Shown here: positions 926 through 63,595 of the stretch, one piece after another
Layout: every line of letters starts with the position of its first letter
Position numbering within the stretch: the first letter of the stretch is position 1
From: Pavona decussata
Lineage: Eukaryota
Assembly (NCBI GenBank): GCA_977016875.1
Contig: CDRNST010000078.1
Span: forward strand, 4,960,001-5,024,000
Direction of reading: 5' to 3'
Length of the DNA stretch: 64,000 bases
Translations under genes and position numbers: made by a program
Notes under the pieces: generated by a model
The model's input: the letters and a program-made list of their open reading frames with translations, nothing else
The model's database searches: none
Told to the model about the DNA's origin: nothing

Positions 926-937
926 TGACCCAAGGAG

Positions 938-2020: not shown

Positions 2021-2251
2021 GTTGTCTGAGGATTTTTCAGTGCTTTTTGGAAAGTTGTGCAAACAATTGCGTATTTTATTTACTCTCTGTTACCAAAATA
2101 TCGCACTTGTAATACATTAACACAGATACCGCCTTCAGGTTGTGACGCGCGTGACTGCGTCAGACACAGTTGATATAGCCCGATAAATGTGTTGACAAAT
2201 AATCTACTAATTAGTCACTCCCTTTGTTTTGTCACGCTTAAAGCCGGCTGA

Positions 2252-2402
2252 CAATCTTGGACAGATCAAATGAAAAATTAAGACCACCCCTCCCCCCCAT
2301 TTCAATGATGGAAAAATGGCGCGTTTTGCTTTGCGCGCGGATTCATCATTGAATTTGGGGGGAGGGGGGGTTTAATTTTTCATTTTATTCTGTCCAAGAT
2401 TG
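2252..2402. mobile_element. MITE with about 55-bp imperfect TIRs (CAATCTTGGACAGA...TCTGTCCAAGATTG)
   Basis: Direct inspection; TA on the right flank. Confidence 0.75.
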
Positions 2403-3438: not shown

Positions 3439-3614
3439 CGGGAGAAACAAAGGAGAAATCTAACTTGTATCCCCCGCGCGTGAAATAGCCGTTTGATCGA
3501 AAGGTTAGCACAGCATAGTGTCCAGTAAAACTGATGTTCAATCCAGACTTCACCCCACAGTATGTGCCTACGGTATAGTTGTTATCATTGGAAATCCTCA
3601 AGTAGTCACCAAAC
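3439..3614 (-). CDS. CUB domain 3, second exon (176 nt)
   Basis: Within ORF 3431..3727: FGDYLRISNDNNYTVGTYCG...FRSNG...GYKLDF; tttgcag / gtaagt. Confidence 0.88.
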
Positions 3615-6600
3615 CTGCAAACAAGGAAGACGTATTTGCTTAGTTCATTGATGACTAGATAACATACGCTTAAATGACATGAGCTAACACAACTTGATAA
3701 GATAAGATGTGACAAAATCACACGCATTATTATATGTTTACTGAGTTAAAGGAGCACCGCCAATTCCTAACAAATAAGAGCACATATATACATTAAAGTA
3801 GGACAAACATTACAATAACTTACATTTAAACTATATAATGACAAATCGACAAGGTAATCGATAAAAAAATGCTAAAGTAATCCTTGGCTTAATAATAAAT
3901 GATGCAAATACAGCGACACAGACAAACAAACCTTATAAACAGCTTACCTATCAATTTGTCTCGAAAAAAAGCAAAGGTTCCAAAACAACCCATAATCAGG
4001 CCAGCATGAATTACAGACAGGCGCGAAGAGTAGAAAATCAGATCACATACATGCAAAACTTGTTTATCACATGTGGAGATGACAATAAATGACAAGGCAG
4101 ACTAGTTATTGATTTGATTCTTAGCCTCAGATCAAAACAACAACAATAACAACAAAAAGCAAACAAAAACACAAAAAGAAGCAAAGAAACAGGCAAATGA
4201 GTCTCAAGATAAAGAAGGGTACTTTTACAGTGATCAGACTAACAAGTAACTTTGTTCTTTACGATGTTTCAAAAACACTTTTTTTCGAGTAGTGTATATA
4301 CCTTTTTTTTCTTTTTTTTTTTTTTTGTCTTTTATTCTTCTCCAGTCATCTCCACAATATACATCAAGAGAATAAAGGTATTAAAATAACGGAGAAAGGG
4401 CCAAAAACAGAAAGACTAATACTTAGCCCTAATGATGAAAAAAAAAAAAAACAAGGTTCAAGCAAATATAGACAAAACAAAGAAACAATAGCAACCACCG
4501 TTATCATGCAATGGAGGTTATGTAATGTATAATCTAAACACTGATTCGATAGTTTTGTACCTGCAAGATGAATAACCCGCCAGGGTAAAATTAGAAAAGT
4601 AAATCCTTATGGCCATGTCGTGTGGAATTTGTACTCGATAAACACAGTCCATGTTGTTTGGATAGTTGTTTGGATATCCGGGACTTTTCAGGACGTTGTT
4701 GACAACGGCACCACATCCTGTTGGATTAAGTAGACATTTAGTTTTAATGAGTAATTTCTTAGATATAGATCAGTTTGTGATAAAAGTTAACGCTAAAAAA
4801 TCACGACCTTTCGACCTCTCCAAGGTCGATTTCAAGTGCGAGTAAAAAAAAAACCAAAGCTTAGCATAAATATATTACAAACAGTCAAAATCAGTAAGAA
4901 TGTCATGAACGCTAAAATGTGATAAAACTTGTGGATTATAAGTTTTATCGGACATAAAAAGGACATAAAACACTGAAACAATTAAACAATAACGAGGCTT
5001 CCTAAGAGCGGATCTAAAGAGATAATTTTGCGCGGACGGAATCACACTGTTGTTTAGTGTTGGTTTAGGTTCTTTGATAAAAAAAAAAGCGTTACGAAAA
5101 TGAGGCAGTCAAGTTTGTTCTGACATTTTCTTAAAATTTTTAAACTTCGCACAGTGCCATTTGAGGCTATATTGTGCTGCCCCGTCAGGTGGTTTCCGAT
5201 TACCGATCCCTTGTGTTCTTGAATTCGCTGGTGAAGATGTCGATACGTGTAACCGACATAACCTGCATCGCATAGGCTACACTGAAAATGATAAACAACA
5301 CACTGTTGATTCACAAGGGGTGACTTGTCTTCCCTCACTTTGATTATTTTCGTCCTTGATCTTTCGACTTGTGTACACCGGGCTGATATCCACATTGATC
5401 TTCCGACTTAGGTCTTGAAGTTGTCTGCGCACTGCGGTTATAGATTTCTGATGTTTGAAAGGCAAAACGATTCTGATGAGGGATTCTTGATCTCAGGTAC
5501 TTGCTGTTGGGTAGGTGAATCCTCAGACACTCTTCAATCAATGCATTGACGGATGGTAGACTGCGCAAGTTTGTCTGGGTAGCGCAGTCGGGAAAAGGTT
5601 ACCTTGAGGCGTCCTGATTCCTGATTAAAGAGTTTCTACGTAGATGAGAGCTTAAATGCAAGGTTGAGGATGTTTCAAAATTTAAAGAAAGTGTCAGAAC
5701 AAACTTTACTGCCTCATTTTCGAAATGCTTTTTACCAAAGAACTGAAACCAACACTAAACAAACAGGGTGATTCCATCCGCGCGAAATTATTTGTTTAGA
5801 TCAGTTCTTAGCAAGCCTCATTATTGTTTTAATGTTTCAGAGTTAAAGTCCAGTTTTACTTTATAAATACTTATCATTGACACATTTTATCACATTTTAG
5901 CGTTTATAACACTCTTACCGATTTTAACTGTTTGTAATATATTTATGCTAAGCTTTGTATTTTACTCTCACTTGAAAACGACCTAGGAGAGGTCGAAACG
6001 TCGAGATTTTTTAGGGTTTACTTTTCAAACAAATTTTAGTTTTAAATAACCATTTTAGAAAGGTTAAAAGGAAAAGAAAACCTGAGTGAAAGAACATAAA
6101 AAAAAACGTTTTAATTAAAAATTAGTACATTCCAAAAAACATGGAAAATAAGTACAATTTTAAGATGTTAAACTCTGCAAAAAACAGCACAAAAGGTATA
6201 AATTGGTTCGTGTATAGCTTTGTACAGTGTAACTACTCTATTAATAGCTTAGCTTTGTGACACGTTTCTTGTTGTTTACCATAATTATAAATCAGAAAAA
6301 GTGCGTTTTACAGAGAAACGCTTGGTTTAGTACGGTTCTTTTTTTTGGCACCTAAGGACGAGTCAAACATAAGTAAATAATATTTTGATTTCCTTCTATT
6401 TAACAATTAAGTGCTCCAAACTCCCAATTTTTTCTTTAAAACAATCCAAGAAAAAATGTTTCGGTTAAATCCTCGCCTTTTTATCCCCCTTAAACTTAAA
6501 TACCGAATTGTTCACGACCGCGTAAAGGGGATCTGGAGAAAGTCAAGTTCTGACGTCAAATCAAGAACGACGCTTAAGCGATTTTCAGTCAGTTATCTTT

Positions 6601-9600
6601 ATTTTCGAACTTTCAAAGCTTTCTGTTGCAAAATTCGTTCGATTCGGGCTCCATAGCCATCAGAATTCTACCGAAATTTACAATTTCATTCACGTCATCG
6701 CATTTGGAGACGCGCTTTGACTCAGGCAACTCAGAAATCAGTTTAATAGCTGGATACGAAATGTAACCCGATCAGGATTTATCCCGTTTATCACCACAGA
6801 GATAACCCAAACCTCGAGTGAGTCTACTAGCGATGACGAAGCTGTTGCTTATGCTGACGTCCCACTGGCGGACGAGAAAAAACAGCGAGATACCAAGGGG
6901 AAGTGAAGGCCGTATTCGAAAAGACCGATAACAGGACAATGTAGAACTCAGGGAATGTCAAGATTCGCGATTGTTTACTTTAATTCCACGCGTCGTTTTG
7001 TCATGCTTATTGATATTTTCCATGTGTTGGTATACTTTCTTTACACGCTAAAACGTTAATATTTCTTAAATCATTTATTCGCTTACATAACGTTACTGTA
7101 CTTCAGATGCAAGTGTAGAAATTGTGGAGTCGTTTGGTTGCAAACATGTGCGAACGTTGTTGCTAGCGCTGTTGTGAACGGTAAGATTGTCGATCACTCG
7201 AGTGTTGTTCTGCTATCACAGAAGTATAAATTGCTGGGAAAGCGGTGATTCCGAATCTGTCTCGCTCTAACCTGTTGTTTACACTCTGGACAGCGATTGG
7301 CAGGCCGCTAAACCGTCGCGCCACTAAATTATAAACCTCACTCGCTCTTTACACCCTGACCGCCATTATGGCGAGCCACCGAGACTTCGAGCAACTAAAT
7401 TGTTAACTCTACTCGTTCTTTACACGCGACTGGCAAGCGGCCTCACTGTGTTATATACCTCTCGAAATGTGTCCCTCTATTGTTTATTTGCTCCGAGTCT
7501 TCATCCTTTGATCCTTAATCCTTTGTGCATGTGCAATTACATACAAAATCGTCCGTTACAAAATACTTCGAGCATATTACTGAACTCTTCGATGACTCCC
7601 ATCGAGCACGCTTCTGTCTAACAAAGTTGACATATATTTTTCTTCGTTTCTTCGCCTCTGGACGCTCATCGCCTTAAGAGGGTATCGTACAATACGCTTT
7701 TCTTTCTTGCAAATTACTAACCTTACTACAACCTCTGCAACTAACTGCAATTAGGAGTCGAACCTACTATTACTAGTTCGGATGCTCTACCACTGAGCTA
7801 CAGAAGACTCGTGGAAGCTAAAGCCATTAAACTAGGTTTATGGGACAAACATCCTGCATACTACTAGGATTGGAGTGTCAATGAGTGGCATATGCGCAAT
7901 GAGAGGAAACGTGATGTGATATTTTTTTTAAGCTTGAGAGCATCTGAACTAGTAATCGGAAGGTCTTAGGTCTTACTCCTGATAGGAACACTCGGGATTT
8001 CTTTTTCTAAGTTTGCCTGTGTTATTACTGAATAATACATCATACTCATTTGTTCACCAGGCAGTGTAGAGCATTCCAACTAGTAAACGTAAGTGCTTAG
8101 GCTCGACTTCTGATAGGAGCACTCGGAATATCTTTTTCGAAGTGCGCCTTTGTTATTACTGAACAGTACATCATTCTCATTTGTTCACCAGGCTTAAAAA
8201 AATATTACATCACGTTTCCTTTCCTAGCTTCAGAAAAGCACAGAAATTGAACAAAAACCAATCAGAACAATTAATTAAAGAAACACTTATTTTACCTAAA
8301 AGCCACAGCTATATTAAGAAAAGTTTTTTTCTTTATTTTGAAAAAGAATTTTTCATTTTGTGAAGAAAACTTCCTGTCAAAATTTGGTTGCCATGACAGC
8401 ATCAAAGTCAATGAATCCAAACGACCACATAAAACTTCTTTCAGTTAAATTTCTAAAAACGACCTTACGTTTCACGGAGTTTGCGCAAATATTAAAAACG
8501 TTATGCAGGTTTAAAGTGGCCGTGGACAGAATCCCTCCTACCAATCTACATACGGTTAATCTAAATATATAAAAGAAACAAGTAAAGTATGTGTAGTGTT
8601 CTCGTGTTCTAAAAGTGACGTCAGCAACCACTAGACCCATGCTCCTTAAAACTCGGTCGTGAACCAAAATGGTGGTGATTTTAGGCTATTTTCCGTTTTT
8701 CCACAGGGTACAAAATAGCGAAGATTTCACCAAATCAAAAAAAAAAAAATACTTCTGCAGAGATGCCTACCAAATTATGGGCATTTTTGTGGGAGAAAAA
8801 ATGGGGATGGAGGGGTTTAGGTGAACTTTGATTGAGTGAGCGTATTGTTAGTATCAATGGAGGCTGCCTGAAGAAGACTTTTTGTTAGTGGAAACTTGCA
8901 AGTAAAGAAATATTACACATAACTTCCATGTGTTTTATTTCAGCAAGTCATTCGAAAACCGCGTTTAATGTTAAATATTGCCAAGAGAATCTGGCTTTAA
9001 AGTATTTAAACAACATTACTTAAATTAATATCCTCTATTGACATAAGACCTCTATTGACATAAGACGTTATCAAAGTCTTACACAAAATGCATGTACTTG
9101 GCTAGCAGAATCAATTTTTAGAAAGTGACAGTCGAATGCTGATTACCGTAAACAAATACAATAACAAACCAGCTTTGGTAAACTTACTTCTTCACCAAGT
9201 TTACAAAAAAAAATCCACTTAATACATTGCAACGATTAAAACGCTTTGCTCTGCAAACATGAAGGCGTTGGAAGATGGAATTTTCACCGGCAAATTTTAA
9301 CAATGCACGAAGAATGAGAAATGCAGTCATCTAATAGTCAATGCAGTAGTAAGAACATAGTGAATGGTGTTGTTGATGGGTTTGTCAAAACAGGAGTTGT
9401 AGTGTGTTCTGTTAAAGAGTTTGTTGTAAACTACATCAATGAAGACCTCGGTGAACCTGTTTATGACTGAATTGGTGCATTTTTTAACTGACCGGTAATG
9501 GTAAGCTCCCTAATTTTCAATTCCTTATCGTCGCACAATTAGTATGCGACAGTTGTCACAAGAATCTTCATATGGATATTATTGTTTAAAGAATGAAGGT

Positions 9601-50200: not shown

Positions 50201-53200
50201 GTAGAAAATGATTTGGTGTTAACGTAACATCATCTGCAGGATTCGCTGACTGATGTCCTAAAAGTTGTGAGTTTATCAGGGTTTCTGCACCAGTGAAGGC
50301 CGTTATCAGTTCTTCGTCCGTCACATCAGTGTTCCCAAAAATCCCATATATAGCTCGTTTGGACGCCTTTATCTTAGACCCGTGTGCACCGCCAAAGGGT
50401 GGAGTCAAAGGGGGATTGAAATGCCATTGTACTTCTTTGTCGGCTGTAGTTACTCTAATCTTGTTCTCGTCTAACTTGTCTACAACAAGTTCTTCCAGTT
50501 GTCGATTTGCTCCCCCGAAATGAGTCCCATTGTCTGAATTCATTTCTTTCGGCAATCCTCTGCCATTCGCTAACCCTAAAATAGGGTAAGGAAGGAATCG
50601 TTGTCCAGTGCAATTGCCATTTTGAAATGTACCACTCTGGTGGTTATACATGTAAACAGACAAAGTTATACCTTAGCTATTTGTTGTCCTCTGCCCTGGA
50701 ATGTTATGAAAGGCCCTTCAAATCTACAAGCATACGACCGAACGCAAGAAGTGGAGTCTAAAGCCAAATTCTTGGGTGAGCCGCTGTGATTTGTTGCGAC
50801 AGTTTGGCTTTTCTTTTACGGTATTCATAGCACTAAGCTTCACAATCTCGGATTTCTTCTCGCCTCTGCATTAACCAAAAACAAGAGAGGACAACATAAG
50901 CAATGTTTGAGGTGTGACTCCCTTTTTCCATGATAATGTCCCATGATCAGCTTGGTTATTCAGTTCTCTCGTCTTTCATGGTAAGATATTAAGGTACTTA
51001 ACGTCATGTGGTACATACTCACCATTCTCTAGACGAGACCAGATCTCATAAACCCATCTTCATCAATTCTTGGTTTTAGGGCGAGTAACTTGTTACCACC
51101 TGGAAGTGTTTTATCCCTTGTCAATTATGAGTACTCTTCTCCAAATGATTCCGCTTCTGCTGACTTCATTACTTGAATGCGCTCGTCCTCGATGTCGTTA
51201 GTAGTCAGCCCACTTTTAATGCGTTTCTCTCCACGTAAACTCAGACAACCGTGTAAGAGGCGATAAACCCAGGCTAGTGTTCTGATGAGACTAATCCAGG
51301 TAGAAAAGCGTCTCGTTTCAAGCCACTACGTAGCATGGTTTTGGATAGCCAACATCGTTGTCCCTTTAATGCTGCAGTCAGTCTGTAGGCGTGCCTGTTT
51401 TCTGACCTCTTTCGTTGCTATTTCATAATTCGATCTATTGCCCATTTAGATATTTTTCCTCTGTAAATACAAAAAGGTCCGTCCCACCGGGTGTCCTTGC
51501 TAGCTAACTCCTCGACTGATAAGACTCTTGTGAGACAATCAGCTGAATTATCGTCAGTGGAAAAATGCATCCACCGTCGAGGACTTGTGTGAGACTGTAT
51601 TTCTCCAATTCTGTTTACAACAAACGCCTTAAATGTCCTGGTTGGTTAGGCGATTTATCTACGATAACACGTTCATGCTATCCGACCAAGACGGGATCTC
51701 GCTAGTTGCAATCTTCAATGCTTACGATATCGATGCACTTAGTCTGAATCCTAGAATTGCGCCCATCAGCTCTAAACGAAGGATACTTGTGGCTGTAAGT
51801 GGTGCAACTCTTGATTTAGAAGCCACTACATGGGGCGAAACAGCTCCATCAATGTGCTCATGTCTGTAATACACGATCGCTCCATACACATTCGATGAGG
51901 CATCCACGAATGTGTGTAGACTCGCGGACTTCACATCCCTGTCTACCGGCTATAGACATCACGATCTTAATTTTTACTAAATGCTCTAGTTCATTGTTGA
52001 ATCACCGAATAACCTTCTTTTCTTGTTACAATTGAAGCGACTGCTCACTAGTCGTTGCCCGTGGTCCAGATTTCTTGCAACAAAGCCTATACACGAATGG
52101 TATATGGCGTCCGAAATCCCATAGGCGCGAAAAATGTTGTTATTCTTCTCAGGAAACTGCGCTTTAGTAGGTCTAACATCTGTACATATCTCGAGGTGGA
52201 TGAACTCGGAAGATGAACATGTTTTCCTTCTCTTCCCATAGTACTCCGAACTTCTAAACAGAGGGCAGCTTACCCTTATCTAGGTCCACTTTTCGCTGCT
52301 GGTATCTCCCACAACAATTGTTCTAGATTAGACAGCCATTTACGTGCGTGCATAGCAGCTTTCTTCCACAGCGTTAAAAGTATTTTTTGTAAAAGTTCAT
52401 GGCTGTCTTATCGTCTGAAACTGAATCCATGCTATTGTCCATATATGTTGACAGATAGTTAAAGATAATATTGCCAGAGATGGTATTGTCACTTATGCGG
52501 AGATACCTTTCTGCTGTGCCACAGACTAACGCCATCGCTTGCTTGTGGAACAGTATCAAAACGCTGAAAAGCACTCGTTTCAACTTAGGTCCCTGTTGTA
52601 CGACATCGCTAAAAGATCCCCTTGCACTTGGCTGACGCGTCAGACACAATGTTCGTCTCCGCCGTTGCTTCGTCCGGCCTCATAACAGATAAGTGTGGTA
52701 GGCAATAGGACTTAATGGGCTTTTCTCTGTTTTTGGGATCTTCCTTACGCAACCTTTCTTCTGGCTCCTTGAGAATGCGTTTCTCTGTTCTTCTCAAGCA
52801 TCTCAGGGCTGTCTCGTAGTTGTCCGGTAACACTGACCGGTCGTCTTTCCAAGGAACTAGGACTTCGTACCGCCCGCTCTCAAATTTGATAGGCCGCTTA
52901 AGTTTCTCGAGCGCGAATTTCTCATTTGGAGTCTCAAAGCTGTGACTTAGCAGTTCTATCTCCAAGACCTTTTGGAGTTTGCAATTTAGTTGCTGCTCTT
53001 ATCATCGGCACGTATAAAAGAAGAGTGAGCGAAACTTGTTCGATAGCGTCCCTCATCAGTACTATTTGGATCGCCGATCGTGTCCATTCGAAGGCCATTA
53101 ACAGTGCAACTGTTTTTACTGGTTTTCTTATAACACCCCTCTCTGATTGATACCGACAAAAATGTCGATTATTGGGCGTGGTCCAAGGTAAAGTAATACC

Positions 53201-56200
53201 CTTTAGATGCTCCAACTTCTTCGCGTATTTTGCCCAGTTGATTGCTCCAATGTTCCCTGAAATGCGTTTTGCAGTGAAAGCTGCTATCTTTACATCTATC
53301 TTTCCATCTAAGCTTTTAAGATTTAGTTGGAAGATTTTTGTCTCGAGGCTGTCGGTTCGACCATTTAGAACGTAAACAGTTACTCTACGGTTCTCCCATT
53401 AAAGTCCTAATTCAACTGTTGATGTATGTCTTACTGATAGAATCGTCCAATAGCGCATTAACGACCACTCGTCTTGCACCATTTGTCATTTCTGCTGTTA
53501 CTTTCCTCATTGCAACATATTCGCGTCTAGTTTCTTTCATGTGCATTGCTGTTGTGTTCGATGTCTCCGGTAAGACTAGTATGGACTCCCCCTCCGTAAT
53601 ATTTCCTACTGGAGCTACTTTAGTTTCATCCCGATGGACGTTTAAGGGCTGAAGATTGTAGCTGTCACTCCTATTGCCGTTTCTTGCAATCACCGGCCTC
53701 TCCTTTCTTTACAATGTAGTAAGACTGTTGTGCGTCCCTACAAACCAAAAAATCGGGACCGTGGGAACGGTATTCCGTGTTGGGTCTCTCCTTGGCATCT
53801 ATAGCAACAACGTTGTTGGGCTGCTTTCGGCCACCTCTTTTCAACGGTTATACCTTAAGACTCGTCGCACCAAATGGGTGGTTATTTCCACAAACTTTGC
53901 ATGTTCGGCGGCTCTTCCTAGGCCACTGGTTTGGATGCATGCATGATCGATCCCCGCGAGTGAACTGATCTGGCCAAGGAAACGTTTGATTTCTCCTTTT
54001 GGTACTGCAATTGCTCCATATCCCTCGAAGCGTCTCAGCTTGTACTGTCTGGAATTCTGCTTCTTGTATAACCCATTGTCGTAATGCTTCTACGCACTGT
54101 GGTTTCTTGTGTTCAAAAATCTATCGATGGTACTGTGCTAGCATTTAGTATGTCATCTTCCTCTGTAGCTTATCATAGAGCGATCCATTGCCCAACTCCT
54201 TATGTCGGCCAGCCTCTTTAAGGTTGATAACTTCGATGTCTTGGATATCAGAGAACTTCTCTATATCTTTGGCGTTACCGACACGGATTGGCTTAAAATC
54301 TCAAAGTTCCTCCAAATAGAGTGCGATCTGTCCTCTTCTTCCTCAATACTTGTAGAGGTAAGCAGAGATGGAATGATCCAAATTCTCAATAACCCTTCGC
54401 CCGATAAGTACTGTCCGGGCTACATTAGCTTGCGTTCGGGTACCGCAGTTGCTTTGTCGATACGGGCTTGAAAAAACTGGGCGCTGATGCTTTGCTTAGT
54501 GGACCCTCAAGCTGTGGTTAGTGCCTGATGGTGTTTTCCGAGTCTTCTTGTCGTCTAATTCTGCTTCTAGGCCGAGCTCCTCGCTGATCTCTCTCTCCAG
54601 GGCTAAATGGGTTTCTTTGACGTTTTCCTTGGCGATCTTTTATGCCCGTTTATCTTTTCTCACGCTCTCTTATTTTTTGGGCAGATTTTACTTCGACCCT
54701 TTCCTTCTCAAGCCTCAATGGCTAGCTATTCACTAAAATCCTTAGCTGCTTATCTCTCGGCGCGCTCTCGAGCCTTTCGCTCTTTGACGTGTAAGCCTTC
54801 ACATCTCCGGGAAGCACAAAATACGATACTGGATGATTCGCAGATATTCGGCAAAATATGAAGGTTTTTGTAGAAAAATGGGGGGGGGGGGGGGGGGGGG
54901 GTAGGTGCACTTTAATTAAGTGACCTTCCCAAATCGTTACTATCAATTGGGGCTGGCATATAAGGTTTATGACAATCGGGAACTTTGGAATAAAGAAAAA
55001 ATTACACAATTTATGTGTTTTTAATTACAGAAGTCGTTCGGAAGCCTCGTTTAATGTTAATTCCTGCCCTGAAAATCTTAATTAACCCTTTCTAGACCGG
55101 GTTCTCTTTTTGTTTTCTGGGTCTGGGAAGGTCGAGGGGTGGGGGGAGACATGAAGAGACATGAAGGCGGCAGCTGAATTACATTTTCAAAAAAATCTAT
55201 TAGCAACGTATACTAAGAGAAGAAAAAGAAATACAATCACCTAGTAGTCAACGCAGTAGTTGGAAGATAGTTAATTGTGGTCTTTGTGTTGTCGGTGTGT
55301 TTGACCAAGCAGGCATTGTTATGTTTCTTGTTAAGAATTGTGTCATAAACTACATTAATGGAGACCTAGGTGAACCTGTTTTTCACTGAATTGGTCAATT
55401 TTTAAACTGACCGGTAATGGTAAGCTCCCTTAAATCTTCAATTCCTCATCGTCGAACAATTTGTATGCTAAAGTTGTCGACAAGTCTAACGTATGATTGA
55501 AAACCTTATTCCAGTATTATATAGTTCAAAAACACAAGTCATTTATTACCTTCTGCTGGACTCGGTGTCACGGACGCTGGTCTGTTTGTGGTTGGTGGGT
55601 CTATCGACGGAGTCACATTGACTGTTGAGAATGAAATTAAAGGCGAAGTAAATAGAGACATCTTGTAAACCAGTTTGTCAAGGTGATGCATTTGCAGACT
55701 TATCTACGATGCTTGTGAGTAAACCGCCCGGTATTTAATTGCGGATCCATGGGAAATTAGAATGTGGCAGTTTTTGACAAGTACAAACGAATGTTTTATA
55801 ATTCTCAGTATCAGGAACAATCAGGGGAGATCAGTCAAACATTGGCTAGTTATTTTGTCTACATGTATTCAAAGGTCATGGAGGGCCTCTCAACAACCAG
55901 CAAATTTTTATTATATTTTCAAGTAGTTCCATTTGTTTTCAAAGGAGAATACGCACTTTCTGAGAATCTGCTGAAGTTCTGCAATCATTCGATAACCACC
56001 CGCTGTTCGACGTCAACGCTATTAATCTGGAAATCCAAAGCATTGGCTACCCTTTTAGCCTTTTGCCTTTTAAACTAGTTCTCTTTCGACGTTTACTGAA
56101 TTTTCTCTATACCACAAAGCAGACACCCGGAGAGGGTAGAACCCGTAGTCTTCATAGGCGTTTCAACACCTGTCGGGCTAGAAGAAACTATCTCAGTAAT

Positions 56201-59200
56201 CACCCGAAATTATACTTTCAATCTTCAGAGTTTTGGTCCCTCTCTCGTCCATTTTTGTTGAGCTAATTTAGCATGGGATTGCCGTCGGATGTCATTTAAG
56301 GTGACCAGTTGAGCCGCATAAATTTAATTTTGAATTTACGTCACAGACATGGTCGGCCGTGCACGGGTCCCGCCATTTCTTCTTGGGGAGGAAAGAAAAA
56401 AAAAAGAGAAGAAAAGGAAATACAGTCACCTACATTCCATTTAGTAGTAAGAAAATATTGAATCGTGTTCTTTGTGTTATCTGTTGGTTTGTCCAAGGAA
56501 GCATTGTAATGTTTCTTCTTAAGAAGTGTGTTTTAAACTACATTAATGGAGAACCTGTTTTTCATCGAAATGGTACATTTTTAAACTGAACTGTGATGGC
56601 TGGCTCCCTTAAATCTTCAATTACTCATCGTCACGCAGTTTGTATGTGAAAGTCGTCGACAAACGTAACGTTAGTTTTTGAAAACCTAAATCTAGTAATA
56701 TATACTTCAAAAAATACAAGTCATATATTACCTGTTGCTTGACTCGGTGTCGGGGAAGCTGGTCTGTTGGTGGTTGGTGGGTTTGTCCACGGAGTCAAAG
56801 TAACTGTTAAGAATCAATTAAAAACCCCAATAAACTGAGAGGTCTTGTAAATCAGTTTTTCAAGGTGATTTACTTCCAGACTTATCCATGATACCTGCAG
56901 AAAATCGCTTGTATTTAATTGCGGATTAACGGCAACTTTCTGAGAATCTGTTGAAGACGTCCAAATATTTGTGACCCGAGGGAGCGACCTACATTTTTGT
57001 AGAAATATATTAATATAAATATATGAAACATATATTTGAACTGCGGGTGAAAGATTAAACAGAAGAAAGATCCTCGCGCTTTATTGTTTCAAGCCGCTAC
57101 GTAGCATTGTTTTTGATAGATAGATAACATCGTTGTCCCTTTAATGCTGTAGTAAGCTTGTGGGCGTGCTTGTTTCCTGACCTCCTTCGTTGCTGTTTCA
57201 TGATATGTTCTACTGCCCATTCAGATTTTTTTACTCTCCAAATACAAAAGTCCTTTCCATCACGTGTCCTCACTAGCTAACTCCTCTACTGATAAGCCTC
57301 TTGTTAGACGATCAGACTGTTGAAGACTTGTGTGAGACTGTATTTCTCCAATTTTGTTAACAACGAACGGCTTAAATGTCGTTTTTCGGCGATAAATCTA
57401 CTATAACACGTTCATACTATTCGACCAAAACGTGGTTTCGCGAGTTGCAATCTTCAATGCTTTCGATATCGATACACTTAGTCTGTGCTCATATCTGTAA
57501 TACGCTACAGTTCCATACGCATATTCAATGAGGCATCTACGAATGCGTGCAGAACTTCACATCCCTGTCTACCAGCTGAGGACATCGCGGTCTTTATGTT
57601 CTCTAATTGCTCTATTCATTGAAACACCGCCTAACCTTCTTTTCCTATTCCAACTTTAGCGACTCCTCAACGTCTCCGTCGTTGCATTTTCGGCCTTATA
57701 ACAGGAAAGTGTGGTAAGTAGCAGGACCCAATTGTTTTTTTTCTATGTTTTTGGGATCGTCTATCCAAGGGATAACGACCTCGTAACGACCACTCTCATA
57801 TTAGATTGATCGCTGTGACTCAGTAGTTCTATCTCCAAGAAACTTTGGAGTTTATCATCTATTTGCTGCTCTTATCGTCCGCGCGTATAAAATAAGTGTG
57901 ACTGAAACGCGTTCAATAGCCTCCCTGATCAGTACTATTTGCATCGCCGATACATGTCCATCCGAGGGCCGTTAACCGTGGAACTGTTTTTCCTGGCTTC
58001 CCTCTAGCATCCCTCACTGATTGATACCGATAAAAATGCCGACGATTGGGCGTGGTCCAAGGTAAAGTAATACCTTTTAGATGCTCCCACTTCTTCTCGT
58101 ATTAGCCCAGTTGATTACTCCAATGTTCCCTGTAACGCGTTCTGCGATGAAAGCTGCTATCTTTACATTATCTTTCCATCAACGCTTTGAAGTTTTAGTT
58201 CGAAGATTTTTGTCTCGAAGCTGTCTGTCCGACCATTTAGAACGTTAACGGTTACTCTACGGTTCTCCCCTTGAAGTCCTAATTCAGCTGCTACATCACT
58301 GTTGATGTATGTCTTACTACTAGCGTCGTCTAGTAGCGCTTTAACGACCACTCTTCTTGTGCCATTTTTGAATACTAGTGTTACTTTCCTCAGTGCAGCA
58401 TATTCGCCTCACGTTTTTTTTTTTTTTTTCATGTGTATTGCTGTTATGTGCAATCTACTTCGGAAAGATTTGTGTGGACTCCCCTTTGTGGTATCTCTAG
58501 CTGGAGCTTCTTTTGTTTCATCTTGATGGACTTTTTAGGGCTGACTCCTATTGCCGTTTCTTGCAATCTCCGGCCTCCCCTTTGCTTTACAATGTAGCGC
58601 GCCTGTTGTGCGTCCGTTGAAACCACAAAGTCGGGACTGTGGGAACTATGTTCCGCGGTGGGTCTCTCCCAGGCATCTGTAGCAAAAACGTCGTAGCGCC
58701 GCTTTCAGCCACCTCTTTTCAACGGTTATAACTTAAAACTCGTCGCATTAATGGGGTGGTTATTTCCACAGACTCTGCATGTGCGGCGGCTCTTAGTAGG
58801 CCAGATTTCTCTTCGGGGTACTGGAATTGCCCCATATCTTTCGAAGCGTCTCAGCTGGTACTATCTGGAATTCTGATTCTTGTATAGCTTATTGTCGTAA
58901 TCTTTCAACAAGCTGCTGTTTCTTGTGTTCAAAAATCCATCGATGGTACTGTGCCAGCATTTACTCTATCGTCTTCCCCTGTAGCTTGTCATAGAGCGAT
59001 CCATTTCCTAACTCCTAATGTCGGCCAGCCTCTTAAAGGTTGATAACTGCGATGTCTAGGATAAAAGCGAACTTCTCTATATCTTTGACGTTACCGGTAC
59101 GGATTAGCTTCCAAGTAGAATGCGATCTGTCCTCTTCTTCCTCCATACTTTCTAATTTGCTCTTAGCAGCTTCATAAGCAGACGTTGAATGATCCTATAT

Positions 59201-62200
59201 CCTATAACCCTTTGCCCAATAAGTACTGTCTGAGCTACAGTAGCTTGTGTTCGGGAGCCGCAGTTGCTTTGTCAATACGGGCTTGAAAAATTCTGGGCGC
59301 TGATGCTTTGCTTAGTGGACCCTCTGGCTGAGGTCGGTACCTGGTGGTGTTTTCCGAGTCTTCTTGTCGTATAATTCTGCTTCTAGGCCGAGTTCCTTGC
59401 TGATATCTGTCTCCAGAGCTAACTGGTTTTCTTTGACGTTTTCCTTGGCGATCTGTTATGCCTGTTTATCTTTTCGGTACCGACTCTCAAGCTCTCTTAA
59501 TTTCTTGAGCAAATTCTTCTTCCACCTTCTCCTTCCTTCTCCGCCCCAATGGCTAGATCTAATTAAACTAAAAACCGTCAGCTGCTTATCTCTCGGCGCG
59601 CTCTCGAACCTTTCTCTGTCCGACGTGTAAGTCTTCTCATCTCTGGGAAGCACAATATACGACACTAGGTGATTCGCAGATTTTCGCCAAAATATAAGGG
59701 ATTTTTGAAGAAAAATTGTGTGTTTAGGTGCATTTTAATTAGGTGAGCTTGGCATGTTGTTAGTATCAGTTGGTGCTGGAATACATAGTTTATGACAATC
59801 GGGAACTTTGGAGTAAAGACTAATTACACATTACATGTGTTTTTAGTAACACAAGTCATTCGGAAGACTCGTTTAATGTATATTGGAAAATCTTAAATTA
59901 ACCTTGTCTAGACCGGGCCTCTTTTATTTTTTGTCTTCTGTGGGAAGGTCTAGAGTTCGGGGAAGGGTGATTGTCCCCCCTCTATAACAGTTGGAGTATA
60001 TGATAGTACGTTTAAAGACGTCTCCTTTGAGGTTCACAGCGCGAAGTGATAACATCATTTCATGTGGTAAAAAAGGTCATAATTGCCAAATGGCGGCCAT
60101 CTTGGATTTCTGGATTTTCAAAAAACCTTCAGGAGAGCCGCGAAATTGAACGAAAAGTTATCAAAACCAATACACAAACAACGTTATGAGCTAAACATAT
60201 TTAAAAATACGGGAAGAAGTGTTGTTTCTTCATTTTAAAAAAGGTTTTCTATTTCCCCCCCAAAAAAATGCCTGTAAAAAATGGTTGCCACGGTAACATC
60301 TACGCAAGCCTACGAACACTAACGACCACATTAATTTTTTTTTTCTAGATAAATTTCTGAAACAATCCTAAAGTTTGAGATAGTTGGCTCAAATATTTTA
60401 AAGTTATCTAGGTTAAAAGTGGCCGTGGCAACAATCAGCACTCCCAACTACTCCTCGGTCTAGATAGGGGTAAAGTATTGAAGCAAGACTCCTTAAATTG
60501 GTATCCTCTATTTACATGATGTTATCAAAGATGTTATCAAAGTTTCACGAAACAAATTCATGTACTTGGCTAGCAGAATTAATCTTTGGAGAGTGAAAAA
60601 GTGCAATAAAATTCTCATCACCGCAACCGAGTAGAGTGAGAAACCAGCTTTTGGAACCTTCCTTCTCCACCAAGTTTAAACCAGTATCGACTCAATACGT
60701 CGCTCCGATTAAAATACTTTGTTCCACAGACATGAAGACGTTGGTAGTTACATTAAATTTAAAAAATATATATTAGCAATATATACTAAGAGAAGAAAAA
60801 GAAACACAGTCACCAAGTAGCCAACACAGTAGTAAGAAGATGATGAATTGTGGTCTTTGTGTTGTCGGTGGTTTGTCTAAGCAGGCATTATAATGTTTCT
60901 TGTTAAGAAGTGTGTTATAAAATGCATTAATGGATACCTAGGCAAACCAGCTTTTCACTGAATTGGTCCATTTTTAAAGTAACTGGTGATGGTAAGCTCT
61001 CTTAAATCTTCAATTCCTCACCGTCGCGCAATTTGTATGCTAAAGTTGTCGACAAGTGTAATGTTAAATTGTAAACCTTATTTCAGTAATATATACCTCA
61101 AACATACAAGTCATATATTACCTGTTGCTGGACTCGGTGTCGGAGACGCTGCTCTGTTTGTGGTTGGTGTGGTTGTCCACGGAGTCACATTGGCTATTAA
61201 GAATCAAATTAAAAACGAAATAAATAGAGAAATCTCGAAACCAGTTTGTCAAAGTGGTGCACTTGCAAACTTATCCACGATGCTTGTCAGAAAACCGCCT
61301 GGTTTTCTATTGCAGATTGACGGGAAATTTAAATGTGGTAGTTTTTGACAAATACAAACAGATGTTTTATAATCCTCAGTATCAGGAACAATCAGCGGCG
61401 ATCAGTCAAACATTGGCTAGGTATTTTCTCTACATGTATCTAAATGTCATAGAGGGCCTCTCAATAACCGGCAAATTTTTATTATATTTTCAAGTAGTTC
61501 CATTTATTTTAAAAGAAGAACGCTCACTCTCTGAGAATCTGTTAAAGTTCTTTAAACATTTGTGAGCTTAGGATCGATTACTAGCTGCTGTTCGCGAAAT
61601 GAGTGCACGCTCATCCCCGAAGAGACAGTTGGACGCGTCACCTTGGCATTGTTAATATTATTTCAACCTATGAGAAACGTGTTTGCCTGAATCGACCAGG
61701 CAACTTAAATTACATAAATTAGCTTTAAGAGGGTTATGGCGAATTAAGTGGATAGTATTTGATCGTGTTATTGAGAAGTTTAAGATTCAAAATCTTAAAG
61801 CTGTGCAATAGAAATTGTTGAAAAAGTTGGCTAACATGCAAGATGCATTCGTTATATTATTTTACTGACACGATTGGGAAAGTCTCTAATTTTCCCAGCT
61901 GCACCAATGGTTTTTGATGTCGTGAAACGGTAGAACTTTCAATCCATAGCTGTCGTAATTTCGCCTTTGATGTCGCTGACAAAGGATCAAGTCGAATTTT
62001 TTAAATCTACAAGGGTCACCGACGAAAAATCCAAGCCGATAAAGCAATTAGCAAATGCCACAGCGCATGCGTACAAAATGGAATAGAGAAGCTAATTCAA
62101 ATGGCTCATAATGATAAGAAAATCTCTTTTAGCATATTAATAGAAACTACATTAATGGAGAAATTGTTTTTAATCGAAATGGTTCTTTTTTAAAACTGAA

Positions 62201-63595
62201 CTGTAATGGCTTGCTCTCTTAAAATTCCTTAAAATTTCAAATTATTCATCGTCGCTCAGTTTCCATGTGAAAGTTGTCGGCAAATGTAACATTACATTTT
62301 GAAAACCGAAATTTAGTAATATATACTTAAAGGCCCAGTTTCACCCATTCGGCTTTGCGGCCGTTTGTTATTGTTTAAAATCGCTTCTATTGTTTAGTCT
62401 TGCGATCTGATTGGTTTACCAGAATATTCCCGCTGGGATGAAAGTCCTGGCGCATTCAAAATAAATCAGACCACGCAAATCGGACTGGTTGATTTCGTTT
62501 CAGTCGCTCCGATTTATTTTAATCTCTAAACCTATAACAAATATGTACTCTCCAAAGCACTCGAGTTCTTTGTACTCCTTTGTGTAAAATTCTCGGCGAA
62601 CGAAATTCGAGGTGTGGTTCGTTTTTCTGCATTCATTCCTTTGAGCGACGCGGCGAAACAGTCGAACAGTTAAAGCCGGCAGCCCTCAACATTAAATAAT
62701 TTTGTGCCAAGATTTTCATTCTATTGTTGTATAAGTTAGACAGTAATCTTAAAGTGTCCTTTCGATTATTATAAAAGCTGACATGAAATGAAATTAACAG
62801 TGCTGGACTCGTTAGCTCAGTTAACATCGCTTCCAAAATTATAGCGAGCTGCGCCGATCTGGTCTATCTTACTATCATGAAATTATTTCTACCTTTGATG
62901 ATAAAGCAACGATGCTACGAACGAATCTGCAGCTTACTAAGCAAATGGGTATTTTAATTTATTTGCCTGTGACAATAAGAAAAAACGAAGGAACGCCACC
63001 TAGAAAACCATACAGTTTATTACGTCTCTTCGCAACGCTGTTTACAGGAATCGGGAGAATAAAATCGAATGGAGCTAAAAAAACTTACGTGTTAAGGTCA
63101 GACATCCGTAGAAATCAGGAACATCGCTACAACAGATGCATGCATGGAGACAACAAATCCTCCCGCTTCTTTGTTTCAGAATAAAAGCGAGACGAATACA
63201 TTCCTTCGGAATAACAACTGTACAACTACATTGTCAACGGCGAGATGTTACTTAGAAGCGACCGACGATTTTCCAATTTTCCTTTCCACACGAAGACTGT
63301 TCTTGAAAACATCCACATAAATAAAGCGAGAGGATATTATACAAAGCTTAGTGACACGAAAAATAGTGATATTCCAGGAAATGAGCTCGATGAATGTGGA
63401 TTACTTTCGCTATTTAGCGCTCGCTGGTAATTTTCTGAATTTTCGACTGTGCGAAATTCAGCTCGGCGCGCAATGTCTCTTGGGTGAACATGGGCCTTTG
63501 AAAAAATACAAGTCATATATTACCTGTTGCCGGAATCGGTGTCTGAGACGCTAATCTGTTTGTGGTTGGTGGGTTTGTCCGTGGAGTCAAAGTAG
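3439..63595 (-). CDS. Partial multi-exon gene: extracellular mosaic protein with P/S/T-rich stalk repeats, 3 CUB domains and 1 Ig-like domain (15 exons, 1794 nt, about 598 aa; both ends outside window or unseen)
   Basis: Exons 63595-63524, 61193-61122, 56803-56732, 55621-55550, 49474-49403, 47661-47590, 41603-41529, 38225-38069, 37299-37127, 20463-20392, 17137-16981, 14724-14552, 9931-9710, 4717-4561, 3614-3439 all have AG/GT ends, compatible phases and no stops. That they form one transcript is inference. Confidence 0.72.
4561..4717 (-). CDS. CUB domain 3, first exon (157 nt): [53 protein letters not shown]
   Basis: Hand translation (not in the ORF track); same splice sites as paralogs. Confidence 0.88.
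4775..5690 (-). mobile_element. Penelope-like retroelement 3' fragment with degenerate GIY-YIG endonuclease
   Basis: CVVYHFQCSLCDAGYVGYTYRHLHQRIQEH...NHL...DCLIF in ORF 5054..5395; frameshifted. Confidence 0.85.
5705..6030 (+). mobile_element. Penelope-like 3' end/pLTR, inverted relative to 4775-5110 (paralogs about 17205-17525 and 38293-38600)
   Basis: Reverse-complement similarity to 4780-5110. Confidence 0.75.
5967..6006 (+). ncRNA. Minimal type I hammerhead-like motif (U3-A8 core variant) in a Penelope pLTR; copies at 4801-4840 (-), 17467-17505 (+), degenerate 38546-38580 (+)
   Basis: TCAC-TTGAAAA-C-GACCT-AGGAG-AGGTC-GAAAC-GTC: core, stem II and palindromic ACGT stem III. Confidence 0.55.
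6407..8831. mobile_element. Degenerate Kolobok-like DNA transposon with THAP remnant, containing SINE and MITE insertions
   Basis: TTAA-(A)GTGC start and GTGAACT-TTGA end; paralog of 38993-40653. Confidence 0.5.
7752..8225. mobile_element. Cluster of tRNA-Thr(AGT)-like SINE fragments (one minus, two plus)
   Basis: tagctcagtggtagagcatccgaactAGTaa...ggttcgactcct A/B boxes; similar to 18541-18762. Confidence 0.6.
9710..9931 (-). CDS. Immunoglobulin-like domain exon (222 nt, phase 1-1)
   Basis: DKPKITIP...VKCSAEGTRPI...GNVTCTATNQAGTDSKTFSVT has the Ig Cys pair and C.A.N..G motif; atttcag acceptor; donor G|gtttgc (alternative in-phase donor at 9664). Confidence 0.8.
10107..10301. repeat. Two adjacent short palindromic MITE-like elements (10107-10198, 10217-10301)
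   Basis: AGGTGATTATAGA/TCTATAATCACCT and AACAATTATT..CGCGCGTTT/AAACGCGCG..AATAATTGTT inverted arms. Confidence 0.55.
10854..11320. mobile_element. Non-autonomous DNA transposon with CCCGGGG..TACT / AGTACC..GGG ends (EnSpm-like)
   Basis: Terminal inverted motif and repeated internal ACCCTGTTTAAGAC-like units. Confidence 0.6.
12393..12612. mobile_element. MITE (CAATCTCGTACCCAGAG terminus, nested inverted repeats)
   Basis: GTACCCAGAGTC / GACTCTGGGGTAC inverted motifs; right end degraded. Confidence 0.45.
12950..13190 (+). mobile_element. L2-type LINE 3' end fragment
   Basis: Degenerate GRSF..APTLWNALP..FKSLLKT and 3' stem-loop TGTAACGCGCCTT..AAGGCGC. Confidence 0.6.
14181..14230. repeat. (AAAT)n microsatellite
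   Basis: About 12 perfect units; absent from paralogous introns. Confidence 0.95.
14552..14724 (-). CDS. CUB domain 2, second exon (173 nt)
   Basis: Within ORF 14544..14801; protein identical to 37127-37299; tttgcag / gtaagt. Confidence 0.88.
15270..15515. repeat. Degenerate minisatellite (TACTTACAATACTACAG-like) in the L1 3' UTR
   Basis: Direct inspection. Confidence 0.8.
15708..16530 (-). pseudogene. L1-type ORF1p (coiled coil + RRM + CTD, Transposase_22-like), one frameshift near 15875
   Basis: LEQYSRRENLRFNNIPE, HAVHRVG..RPIIARF, then DYTKAIQDERRKL in the second frame. Confidence 0.88.
16981..17137 (-). CDS. CUB domain 2, first exon (157 nt)
   Basis: Protein identical to 38069-38225; same splice sites. 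Confidence 0.88.
18541..18762 (+). mobile_element. tRNA-Thr(AGT)-derived SINE-like repeat
   Basis: gtggtagagcatccgaactAGTaatcggaaggtcttaggtttgactcctg. Confidence 0.6.
18865..20050. mobile_element. Remnant of a helicase-carrying DNA transposon (AcademH-like): RecQ-type fragment (+) converging on a Cys-rich ORF fragment (-); paralogs about 47800-49060, 55760-56390, 61340-62140
   Basis: GKSLIF.AAP..FD...VVISPLMSL.KDQV (RecQ motifs I/Ia) at about 19035-19180 and 61760-62030; CLLC...FLCNDRC on the minus strand. Confidence 0.5.
20392..20463 (-). CDS. 72-nt stalk mini-exon, type A: (A)TLTPWTKPPTTNRSAFPTPSQTT
   Basis: ttcttaacag acceptor, G|gtaatg donor, open frame. Confidence 0.78.
20690..21012 (+). 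mobile_element. tRNA-core repeat flanked by about 50-bp inverted arms (second copy about 49635-49955; truncated at about 57020 and 63820)
   Basis: A box TAGCTCAGCTGG, B box GGTTCAAATC; arms 20729-20780 and 20957-21009. Confidence 0.65.
23203..23938. mobile_element. Helentron-associated-type non-autonomous insertion splitting the RT YLDD-equivalent motif
   Basis: Inserted in TT; terminal hairpin ATGCCC-TAAG-GGGCAT; subterminal IR GATGCCC/GGGCATC; flanks rejoin to IVNYLDKFLII. Confidence 0.55.
24207..25448. mobile_element. AcademH-like non-autonomous DNA transposon
   Basis: TIR TAGCCTGAGTATCAGGC / GCCTGATACTCGGGGTA; imperfect 9-bp TSD ATCTCTCGC/TTCTTTCGC; flanks rejoin to LQSLAGSLNFA. Confidence 0.7.
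32128..32147 (-). promoter_or_regulatory. Primer-binding site, tRNA-Trp-like
   Basis: TGGTGACCGCGGACGTGACC abutting the 5' LTR; resembles the complement of the tRNA-Trp 3' end. Confidence 0.7.
32169..33520 (-). mobile_element. 5'-truncated L2-clade LINE inserted in the BEL 5' LTR
   Basis: GVPQGSCLGPLLF, YADDTQLY, SRVDYCNSLL, LWNVLP; (ATT)n tail; one frameshift near 33140. Confidence 0.92.
37127..37299 (-). CDS. CUB domain 1, second exon (173 nt, phase 2-1)
   Basis: YDYLRI...GTYCG...ITFHSN...GYKLDF CUB motifs; tttgcag acceptor, gtaagt donor. Confidence 0.88.
38069..38225 (-). CDS. CUB domain 1, first exon (157 nt, phase 1-2)
   Basis: [29 protein letters not shown] matches the CUB CG..SP.YP..YP.N..C motif; ccaacag acceptor, gtacaa donor. 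Confidence 0.88.
38993..40653. mobile_element. Kolobok-like element with about 80-bp degenerate TIRs and THAP remnant
   Basis: AGTGC..TTTGGTGAGTATCTCTAC left, GTAGAGATGCCTACCAAA..GTGCACT-TTAG right; isolated right ends GTGCACT-TTAA at about 46935, 54910, 59735. Confidence 0.6.
40097..40363 (-). pseudogene. THAP zinc-finger remnant
   Basis: MPARCDAGGCS...P...RWVDFV...ICSKYF; conserved His replaced by Tyr; paralog about 7530-7745. Confidence 0.75.
40763..40994 (+). mobile_element. L2-type LINE 3' end with (TAT)n tail
   Basis: FKDRLKTHLF, GCGCGCGA..TCGCGCGC stem; ATGTG TSD; empty site near 8928. Confidence 0.75.
41529..41603 (-). CDS. 75-nt stalk mini-exon with one extra codon: (A)TLTLSTNQPTTNRPPVSPTPSQVP
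   Basis: ttcttaacag acceptor, G|gtaatg donor; the indel relative to other copies is exactly 3 nt. Confidence 0.8.
41818..42082 (+). mobile_element. tRNA-headed SINE with V-domain-like core
   Basis: GGCGCAGTGG A box, GGTTCAATTCC B box, GGTTTTTCTTCGGGTACTCCGGGTTTCTCC, (TTTA)n tail; absent from paralogous units. Confidence 0.75.
42110..46870 (-). mobile_element. Old degenerate BEL/Pao remnant, duplicated copy
   Basis: ALLEDAS protease region, GGRLENA, gag and RT fragments with many stops. Confidence 0.85.
47590..47661 (-). CDS. 72-nt stalk mini-exon, type B: (V)NVTPWTNPPTTNRAVSVTPSPAQ
   Basis: ttctcaacag acceptor, G|gtaata donor, open frame. Confidence 0.8.
49403..49474 (-). CDS. 72-nt stalk mini-exon, type A: (A)TLTPWTNPPTINRPASQTPSPAT
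   Basis: ttcttaacag acceptor, G|gtaaga donor; overlaps ORF 49284..49469. Confidence 0.8.
50100..54845 (-). mobile_element. Old degenerate BEL/Pao remnant, duplicated copy
   Basis: SDNGTHF..WHFNPP..LTPNHFL, LHTFVDAS..KSRVAPL..RLELM, ALLDDS. Confidence 0.88.
55550..55621 (-). CDS. 72-nt stalk mini-exon, type B: (V)NVTPSIDPPTTNRPASVTPSPAE
   Basis: ttctcaacag acceptor, G|gtaata donor, open frame. Confidence 0.8.
56732..56803 (-). CDS. 72-nt stalk mini-exon, type A: (V)TLTPWTNPPTTNRPASPTPSQAT
   Basis: ttcttaacag acceptor, G|gtaata donor, open frame. Confidence 0.8.
57085..59680 (-). mobile_element. Old BEL/Pao remnant, internally deleted copy (a further copy starts at about 63880)
   Basis: ALLDDASSKTYI; colinear with 51315-54845. 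Confidence 0.82.
59902..60469. mobile_element. piggyBac-like MITE in a TTAA site
   Basis: TTAA-CCTTGTCTAGACCG...CGGTCTAGATAGGG-GTAA; empty sites near 8998 and 41064; left-end-only copies at about 47112 and 55066. Confidence 0.72.
61122..61193 (-). CDS. 72-nt stalk mini-exon, type B: (A)NVTPWTTTPTTNRAASPTPSPAT
   Basis: ttcttaatag acceptor, G|gtaata donor, open frame. Confidence 0.8.
62331..63497. mobile_element. Kolobok-like non-autonomous element
   Basis: TTAA-AGGCCCAGTTTCACCCA...TGGGTGAACATGGGCCT-TTGA; empty site in other mini-exon units. Confidence 0.72.
63524..63595 (-). CDS. 72-nt phase 1-1 stalk mini-exon, type A: (A)TLTPRTNPPTTNRLASQTPIPAT
   Basis: ttcttaacag acceptor, G|gtaata donor, open frame, paralogous to 7 other copies. 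Confidence 0.8.

Follow-up and report, generated by a model that had tools for sequence, protein, structure and literature searches.

Candidate 72-nt mini-exons arrayed with CUB and Ig exons at a transposon-filled locus of Pavona decussata

Exon layout of the locus

The stretch of DNA analysed here, in the following called the window, covers 64,000 nt (positions 4960001-5024000) of contig CDRNST010000078.1 (C78), one of the 1180 contigs of the TE-rich 602-Mb Pavona decussata assembly with its GC content of ~39%. All 15 exons recognised, which together amount to 1794 nt, are located on the minus strand and comprise eight mini-exons of two types, A and B, six CUB exons and one Ig exon, in the 5' to 3' order A, B, A, B, A, B, A-like, CUB3, A, CUB2, Ig, CUB1. 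Searches were run exon by exon, never on a protein spliced in silico, and the two halves of each CUB domain were scored separately.

The eight paralogous mini-exons with AG/GT ends reported in an earlier note on this DNA could be located exactly (all coordinates are those of the window). The array begins with the type A unit c63 (63524..63595), a subtype that also leads related arrays, and continues with c61 (type B, 61122..61193), c56 (type A, 56732..56803), c55 (type B, 55550..55621), c49 (type A, 49403..49474) and c47 (type B, 47590..47661), each of 72 nt between AG/GT ends, up to the divergent A-like unit c41 (41529..41603), which is the final unit ahead of CUB3. The remaining type A unit, c20 (20392..20463), is placed between CUB3 and CUB2. 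The alternation of the two types noted earlier is borne out by this order, as is the sole indel of +3 nt, c41 having a length of 75 nt and the other seven units 72 nt. On the acceptor side the units are preceded by a pyrimidine-rich tract ending in AG (...TTGATTCTTAACAG), while the donor reads GTAAT or GTAAG in 8/8 cases.

Each CUB cassette consists of two exons, exon A with 157 nt (phase 1 to 2) and exon B with 173 or 176 nt (phase 2 to 1), and the exon coordinates confirm that the CUB cassette and the Ig exon are phase 1-1 modules. CUB3 is encoded by exon A at 38069..38225 (phase 1 in, 2 out), the protein sequence of which equals that of CUB2 exon A (Pfam CUB 4.4e-10), and by exon B at 37127..37299 (phase 2 in, 1 out); CUB2 by exon A at 16981..17137 (Pfam CUB 4.4e-10) and exon B at 14552..14724 (2.2e-05); and CUB1 by exon A at 4561..4717 (4.7e-10) and exon B at 3439..3614 (7e-04), the last recognisable exon, which is followed by a GTAAGT donor. 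Against the CUB profile PF00431 with its cutoff of 21.4 bits, the exon A halves score 40.2-40.3 bits over profile positions 9-54 and the exon B halves 20.3-25.2 bits over positions 57-110. Four conserved CUB cysteines are found in 3/3 cassettes, at the start of exon A, in ...MDCVY..., in the closing ...SCR or ...YCR of exon A and in ...GTYCG... of exon B. The phase 1-1 Ig exon (9710..9931) aligns with positions 2-78 of the 79 positions of Ig_2 (PF13895) at 27.6 bits (cutoff 27, E = 3.5e-06) and possesses both cysteines of the beta-sandwich, in ...VKCSAEG... and ...NVTCTATN....

The CUB cassette has been duplicated as a block of ~2.8 kb, which reaches from 640 nt 5' of exon A to 1.1 kb 3' of exon B. 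Exon A is identical in CUB2 and CUB3 and its immediate flanks are 99-100% identical, which indicates a recent copy or gene conversion. CUB1 and CUB2, on the other hand, differ at 20% of the exon A sites without codon-position bias. Cassettes 1 and 2 share 94-96% identity in the intron piece 3' of CUB exon B (2421-3013 vs 13489-14081), which has a further counterpart at 36116-36705; as the exons of CUB1 and CUB2 differ by 10-20%, they have diverged faster than the adjoining intron.

The introns of the array are filled with retroelement DNA. The array has a period of 6.8-7.9 kb, which consists of a retroelement piece, exon A, 1.2-2.4 kb of spacing and exon B, whereby one degenerate retroelement piece recurs ahead of each A-type unit. 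Within the 7-8 kb unit this piece is located at 42100..46700 on the minus strand, with sister pieces at ~50100-54700, 57700-59500 and 33500-35900 and upstream of c63. The earlier note had described the transposable element DNA duplicated with the units as riddled with stops and frameshifts, and stops and frame switches are indeed present in every copy of the piece. As the frameshift rate of this DNA predicts only ~1.3 frameshifts in the 504 nt of the seven mini-exons other than c41, the observed zero is not significant and the window by itself does not prove constraint, the support for which comes from the genome-wide copies.

Several further elements reside in the window. The intron between CUB3 and c20 harbours a BEL/Pao-type retrotransposon (27963..30724, minus strand) with long ORFs, a Peptidase_A17 domain (8.5e-44) and an rve integrase core, which is found also in the duplicate locus described below. 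A THAP zinc-finger ORF (40097-40438, minus strand, 7.2e-05) between c41 and CUB3 probably stems from a DNA transposon, the CUB2 intron contains an ORF (15.8-16.5 kb) with weak matches to coiled-coil Pfam families only, and a 700-nt element between c61 and c63 (62800-63500), which occurs with 95-98% identity on >25 contigs, represents a young dispersed repeat that has no relation to the mini-exons.

Neither end of the gene was recovered. Extension of the locus towards a signal peptide and a TM/GPI exon, as proposed in the earlier note, was carried out and neither was found. A signal-peptide exon was not recognised upstream of c63, between the units and the CUB exons or in 40 kb of upstream sequence with a search that combined tblastn with the N-termini of family proteins (see below) and a scan for an ATG, a hydrophobic core and a phase-1 donor, by which short exons are easily missed. 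A signal-peptide-like ORF at 39533 was discarded; it lies ~560 nt 3' of the THAP ORF and probably belongs to the same transposon-like stretch. The sequence upstream of c63 is occupied by a degenerate retroelement and, ~3.7-24 kb beyond the window end, by a 2.2-kb tandem repeat. This repeat has copies that are 79-90% identical, some of them inverted, an internal sub-repeat and stops in all frames of the best-conserved blocks, and it looks non-coding. The possibility that the units constitute the 3' stalk of an upstream LRR gene was rejected for this locus, as the 40 kb upstream contain no LRR, CUB or Ig exons.

On the 3' side, CUB1 takes the place after Ig that is held by LRRNT/LRR exons in related proteins. 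In the 134 kb from -30 to +40 kb of the window, tblastn with the LRR portions of eight family proteins gave no LRR exon, and an LRR pattern was absent from all six frames, the mini-exons being devoid of one in any frame; a terminal (3') exon and a TM/GPI exon were not found at the locus. Where a downstream exon is expected, the CUB1 cassette adjoins the proximal end (1..2400) of a Tc1/mariner-type tandem array of ~9 copies of a 2573-bp unit with a transposase ORF at 938-2062 (DDE_3, HTH_Tnp_Tc3_2). This array, 23 kb in length and 99.7-99.96% identical among its copies, extends ~20.9 kb before the window start and results either from very recent amplification or from an error of the assembly. 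At ~2400, exactly at the start of the 2573-bp array, the homology shared with the other CUB cassettes breaks off.

With the start, the LRR part and the 3' end not found, the locus may be an incomplete or decaying family member. A more radical version of this reading, which holds that the window contains a broken or chimeric pseudogene copy, deprived of start and LRR/3' part by rearrangement and transposon insertion, while family and mini-exons are functional elsewhere, is unlikely. It would account for the lack of start, LRR and terminal exons over 134 kb, for the nearly identical transposon array that begins where the CUB-cassette homology ends, for a CUB-Ig-CUB order that departs from the CUB-Ig-LRR order of the family, and for the missing codon-position bias between CUB1 and CUB2. 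However, open frames and splice sites are kept in 15/15 exons, and short signal-peptide and terminal exons can easily escape the searches used. The same CUB-Ig-CUB order, moreover, recurs on contig C240 at 87-96% identity, which argues against a one-off accident.

Constraint and reading frames of the mini-exons

Constraint on the mini-exons was assessed in 21 local copies, drawn from the window, from its duplicate at a distance of 1 Mb (97.5-98.4% identity) and from a related contig. In 21/21 cases the AG/GT ends are intact and the unit measures 72 or 75 nt. Mean pairwise identity in these copies is 0.82 in the exon compared to 0.67-0.68 in the 250-nt flanks, gap events occur at 3.5 per kb in the exon versus 26-27 per kb in the flanks, the single exon indel being +3, and with the flank-derived tree 73 changes are counted in the exon as against ~132 expected from flank rates. 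All base classes evolve more slowly in the exon than in the flanks, A sites fourfold, and the slowing of A sites is independent of codon position in the Pro/Thr/Ser-rich (P/S/T) frame. Genome-wide, the exon-centred 101 nt are 90-95% identical as compared to 83-88% for the surrounding 231 nt, the 50-100 nt 5' of the acceptor are conserved as well, as expected for a used splice site, and ~120 genome copies align without gaps over at least 18 of 23 residues. The mini-exons are under nucleotide-level constraint, substitutions being approximately halved and indels reduced to about a tenth relative to the flanks. The paralogous modules of the earlier note are conserved exon-like units with intact splice signals, and at most related loci they are accompanied by CUB/Ig exons of the same strand.

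Each of the eight units, like every other local copy, has two open frames, the P/S/T frame (phase 1-1) and a second frame (YFDSVDKPTNHKQ..., phase 2-2), owing to the composition of the units, which are A/C-rich with 13% T. The open P/S/T frame on which the earlier note had relied holds for 8/8 units, but it is not the sole open frame in the window, and the P+T+S content of 52-65% per unit in the phase 1-1 frame applies only if that frame is translated. The second frame has C in the third position of nearly all codons, includes a cysteine in the type B units, and runs into a stop exactly at each donor (AGG TAA).

The distribution of stops and the exon phases favour the P/S/T frame. Stops are absent from this frame in 96 and in 93 genome-wide hits (0 in both sets), while the second frame is interrupted in 10/120 and 10/118 copies, and a neutral simulation predicts a stop in 9-24% of the copies in either frame, a statistic to be read with the non-independence of the copies in mind, as many contigs resemble duplicates of each other. 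Seven of the 10 copies broken in the second frame are also contained in the P/S/T lists and are open there. The ~100 copies beyond the 21 local ones are known by their coordinates, identities and stop counts. The P/S/T frame is also the only one that is phase-compatible with every CUB and Ig exon and, being in addition stop-free genome-wide, it is kept as the more likely translated frame.

The substitution pattern, on the other hand, does not follow this frame. Relative to neutral flank rates, synonymous changes in the P/S/T frame occur at 0.43 and nonsynonymous changes at 0.55, four-fold sites evolve more slowly than introns, and omega is ~1.1-1.3, or 1.11 after correction for the mutation spectrum; the synonymous excess that is the signature of purifying protein-coding selection is not seen in this frame among the 21 local copies. 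This leaves room for a rival in which the units are coding exons in the second frame, reading S-YFDSVDKPTNHKQTSVPDTESSN in type A and QCDSVDKPTNHKQSSVRDTESST in type B, which in phase 2-2 could not join the CUB exons in frame and would be part of a separate transcript or gene travelling with the CUB gene. Changes by codon position, counted by parsimony, amount to 20, 19 and 34 in the second frame versus 19, 34 and 20 in the P/S/T frame, synonymous changes in the second frame are near neutral (0.75) while nonsynonymous ones are reduced to 0.45 (P = 8e-10), and pN/pS is 0.51 as compared to 1.26 in the P/S/T frame. Amino-acid identity is likewise higher in the second frame at most loci, with for example 100% vs 87% at three loci, and the differences between c41 and c49 are mostly silent in it.

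This second-frame reading is nevertheless judged improbable. C sites, which are ~2.4 times more mutable and fall mainly at one codon position, evolve equally fast at all three positions, so that much of the period-3 signal is compositional and codon-position periodicity is weakened as proof of the second frame; once C mutability is allowed for, omega rises to 0.72 with P = 0.12. The stops in 10/120 copies are about what neutrality predicts, the phase clashes with every neighbouring CUB and Ig exon, and no phase-2 partner exons were found. Public collections contain no protein of 24-75 aa that shares three 5-residue words with the second-frame unit and none of 30-96 aa that does so with the P/S/T-frame unit, and the degenerate 25-nt core pattern of the unit has no match in JGI metagenome contigs.

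With neither frame displaying significant amino-acid-level selection after correction, the units might also be spliced but untranslated exons or RNA-level elements, for example 5' UTR leaders conserved for exon definition. Such a role would be in line with a constraint that acts on nucleotides and is largely independent of frame, as seen in the fourfold slower A sites and the kept acceptor region of ~50-100 nt, with the position of the units 5' of the CUB exons, and with the lack of a recognised signal-peptide exon upstream of the array. It is considered about as improbable as translation in the second frame, as an untranslated leader does not readily explain a length of 72/75 nt in 21/21 local copies and near-full-length ungapped alignments in ~120, nor 0 stops in one frame over ~100 copies when 9-24% are expected, and as a signal-peptide exon, with which translation could start behind the leaders, was not recognised between the last unit and CUB exon A. 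Coding in the P/S/T frame is retained as the preferred reading, and the nucleotide-level constraint could derive from exon-definition signals in tiny exons between giant introns or from dual-frame use.

Arrays and relatives in the genome

DNA and protein searches of the whole assembly recovered 114-124 candidate mini-exon copies. The 120 matches that were clustered make up 34 oriented arrays, which contain 1-8 units each, most often four, and in which A and B units are usually paired as A-B and often are ~1.0 kb apart. For 27/34 arrays the next 30 kb downstream contain a same-strand family CUB exon A, at a distance of 1.6-15.4 kb (median 7.2 kb), and an opposite-strand CUB exon within 30 kb is found for 0/34. 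With this oriented linkage the units follow the pattern of 5' exons in a coral family of CUB-Ig(-LRR) genes, which argues against a mobile element. That the units are nothing but part of a mobile or satellite-like repeat with a retroelement piece, exon-like in looks and dispersed to ~120 sites by transposition, is accordingly very unlikely. In its favour, one and the same degenerate retroelement supplies the flanking pieces in every case, relatives of the units are missing from public protein collections, and the 503 nt around c63 recur with about 95-100% identity on many contigs (at least 12 loci). Against it, besides the arrangement upstream of same-strand CUB exons, the exon is better conserved than the surrounding repeat, and the units have preserved their length and one open frame next to a decayed transposable element coding sequence.

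The array in the window is, with eight units, the longest in the genome. A near-duplicate locus of at least 60 kb with the same eight units is located 1 Mb away on C78 (G000:C78:5980001-6050000); in the comparison with window positions 14226-52492 it is 97.5-98.4% identical, transposable element insertions included. Further copies of the CUB2 exon with 94-100% identity are present on contig C231, and both the near-duplicate and these copies are recent segmental duplications or uncollapsed haplotypes. Contig C240 is colinear with the window locus at 87-97% identity and carries five units and two CUB cassettes instead of eight and three; it may represent an allele or a paralog. Related loci with five versus eight units indicate that complete blocks of 7-8 kb have been gained or lost, and unit number has changed with them. 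The variability of spacer length and CUB number surmised in the earlier note stands insofar as unit number ranges from 1 to 8 among paralogous loci through duplication of the 7-8 kb unit, whereas exon skipping as its source is hypothetical.

By similarity, the CUB and Ig exons of the window appear to belong with a coral CUB-Ig-LRR receptor family. A HMMER search with the Ig exon recovered 337 relatives, the full-length ones among which are signal peptide-CUB-Ig-LRRNT-LRR proteins. The best matches to the Ig exon are short ORFs continuing past the donor into intron sequence, hence genomic calls rather than transcripts, and the ORF of CUB2 exon A matches two public genomic read-through ORFs (~80% identity) with intron-encoded residues ahead of the CUB domain, which as such provide no evidence for splicing. 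Alignments of family proteins with the CUB and Ig exons are in the range of 42-57%, those of full-length members with the Ig exon alone show 46-57% identity (tblastn), and the CUB2-to-Ig junction (...PP/D/KPKITIP...) fits the consensus of the CUB-Ig-LRR family. Copies of CUB exon A at related loci of this genome are 67-100% identical. The mini-exon sequence is absent from the retrieved full-length family proteins, and in one of them, P0060, signal peptide and CUB domain are separated by a short stretch rich in S/T/P. A full-text literature search retrieved no description of the CUB-Ig-LRR family.

A possible N-terminal spacer of variable length and its known counterparts

The best explanation, held tentatively and with somewhat less than even confidence, is that the gene in the window, swollen by transposons and recently duplicated anew, belongs to a lineage-specific CUB-Ig-LRR family of corals in which 72-nt coding mini-exons provide an N-terminal spacer. 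In one subfamily, arrays of two alternating 72-nt mini-exon types are located 5' of the first CUB exon and on the same strand. As symmetric phase 1-1 coding exons, these would contribute 24 residues each with 52-65% Pro/Thr/Ser, the type B unit carrying in addition an N-V-T sequon, and together they would form a flexible, probably glycosylated spacer before the CUB domain. Translation in the P/S/T frame, glycosylation and the role as spacer are inferred from sequence. The array has grown by tandem duplication of the 7-8 kb unit composed of a dead retroelement piece, exon A and exon B, and the CUB cassette of ~2.8 kb has been copied to a total of three at the window locus, both of which account for the longest array (eight units versus a mode of four) and the unusual CUB-unit-CUB-Ig-CUB order.

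Seen as a whole, the earlier interpretation of a modular extracellular gene with stalk exons is partly supported. The words 'stalk' and 'combinatorial' reach further than the data. A membrane-proximal 'stalk' does not agree with the position of the units, which 5' of the CUB exons would encode an N-terminal spacer instead, and a TM/GPI exon was not found. A more far-reaching and speculative scenario, to which only a low probability is assigned, envisages a receptor family of ~30 loci in which an exon-per-repeat spacer is reset to 1-8 units by unequal crossover between the retroelement-bearing 7-8 kb units, perhaps varying between haplotypes, and in which the mini-exons are doubly constrained, by a stop-free frame on the one hand and a code in the other frame or at the RNA level on the other, pointing to dual use or strong exon-definition signals.

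If transcripts confirm the preferred reading, corals would possess a fast-expanding family of secreted or surface CUB-Ig(-LRR) proteins, the N-terminal reach of which is tuned by gain and loss of whole mini-exons. This would amount to a simple heritable variation in the geometry of recognition molecules in animals that discriminate symbionts, pathogens and neighbouring colonies. The dead transposon pieces in the introns would be a natural example of the substrate for exon-array expansion, and the avoidance of stops in one frame together with the substitution pattern of the other poses a puzzle on the constraints that act on very short exons.

Modular extracellular genes of symmetric exons are known, and the putative spacer array with one mini-exon per repeat would be a variant of these. 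Closest are the uncharacterised coral and cnidarian signal peptide-CUB-Ig-LRRNT-LRR proteins (P0131, P0044, P0016, P0019), which share with the window locus the split of the CUB domain over two exons, the pattern of the CUB-to-Ig junction and the modular symmetric exons. The window locus differs from them in the absence of LRRNT/LRR exons, in the presence of three CUB cassettes instead of one, and in the mini-exon arrays ahead of CUB, which the retrieved proteins do not have.

Mucin-like Pro/Thr/Ser spacers of variable repeat number occur in cell-surface receptors, such as in the macroglycopeptide region of the LRR receptor GPIb-alpha. As at the present locus, short P/T/S-rich repeats in varying number are attached to a binding ectodomain in GPIb-alpha, but its repeats are contained within one exon and are positioned next to the membrane, whereas here each repeat would be a 72-nt exon, with the exons several kb apart and N-terminal to CUB, and glycosylation is putative.

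Symmetric arrays with one repeat per exon that have grown by unequal crossover are known from the PEVK exons of titin and the 54-nt exons of collagen. While the duplicated unit at the coral loci is with 7-8 kb composed mostly of dead retroelement and, unlike in titin and collagen, contains two alternating exon types, the common denominator of all three systems is an exon length that is a multiple of three with the same phase at both ends, tandem duplication of exon plus intron, and differences in copy number between paralogs.
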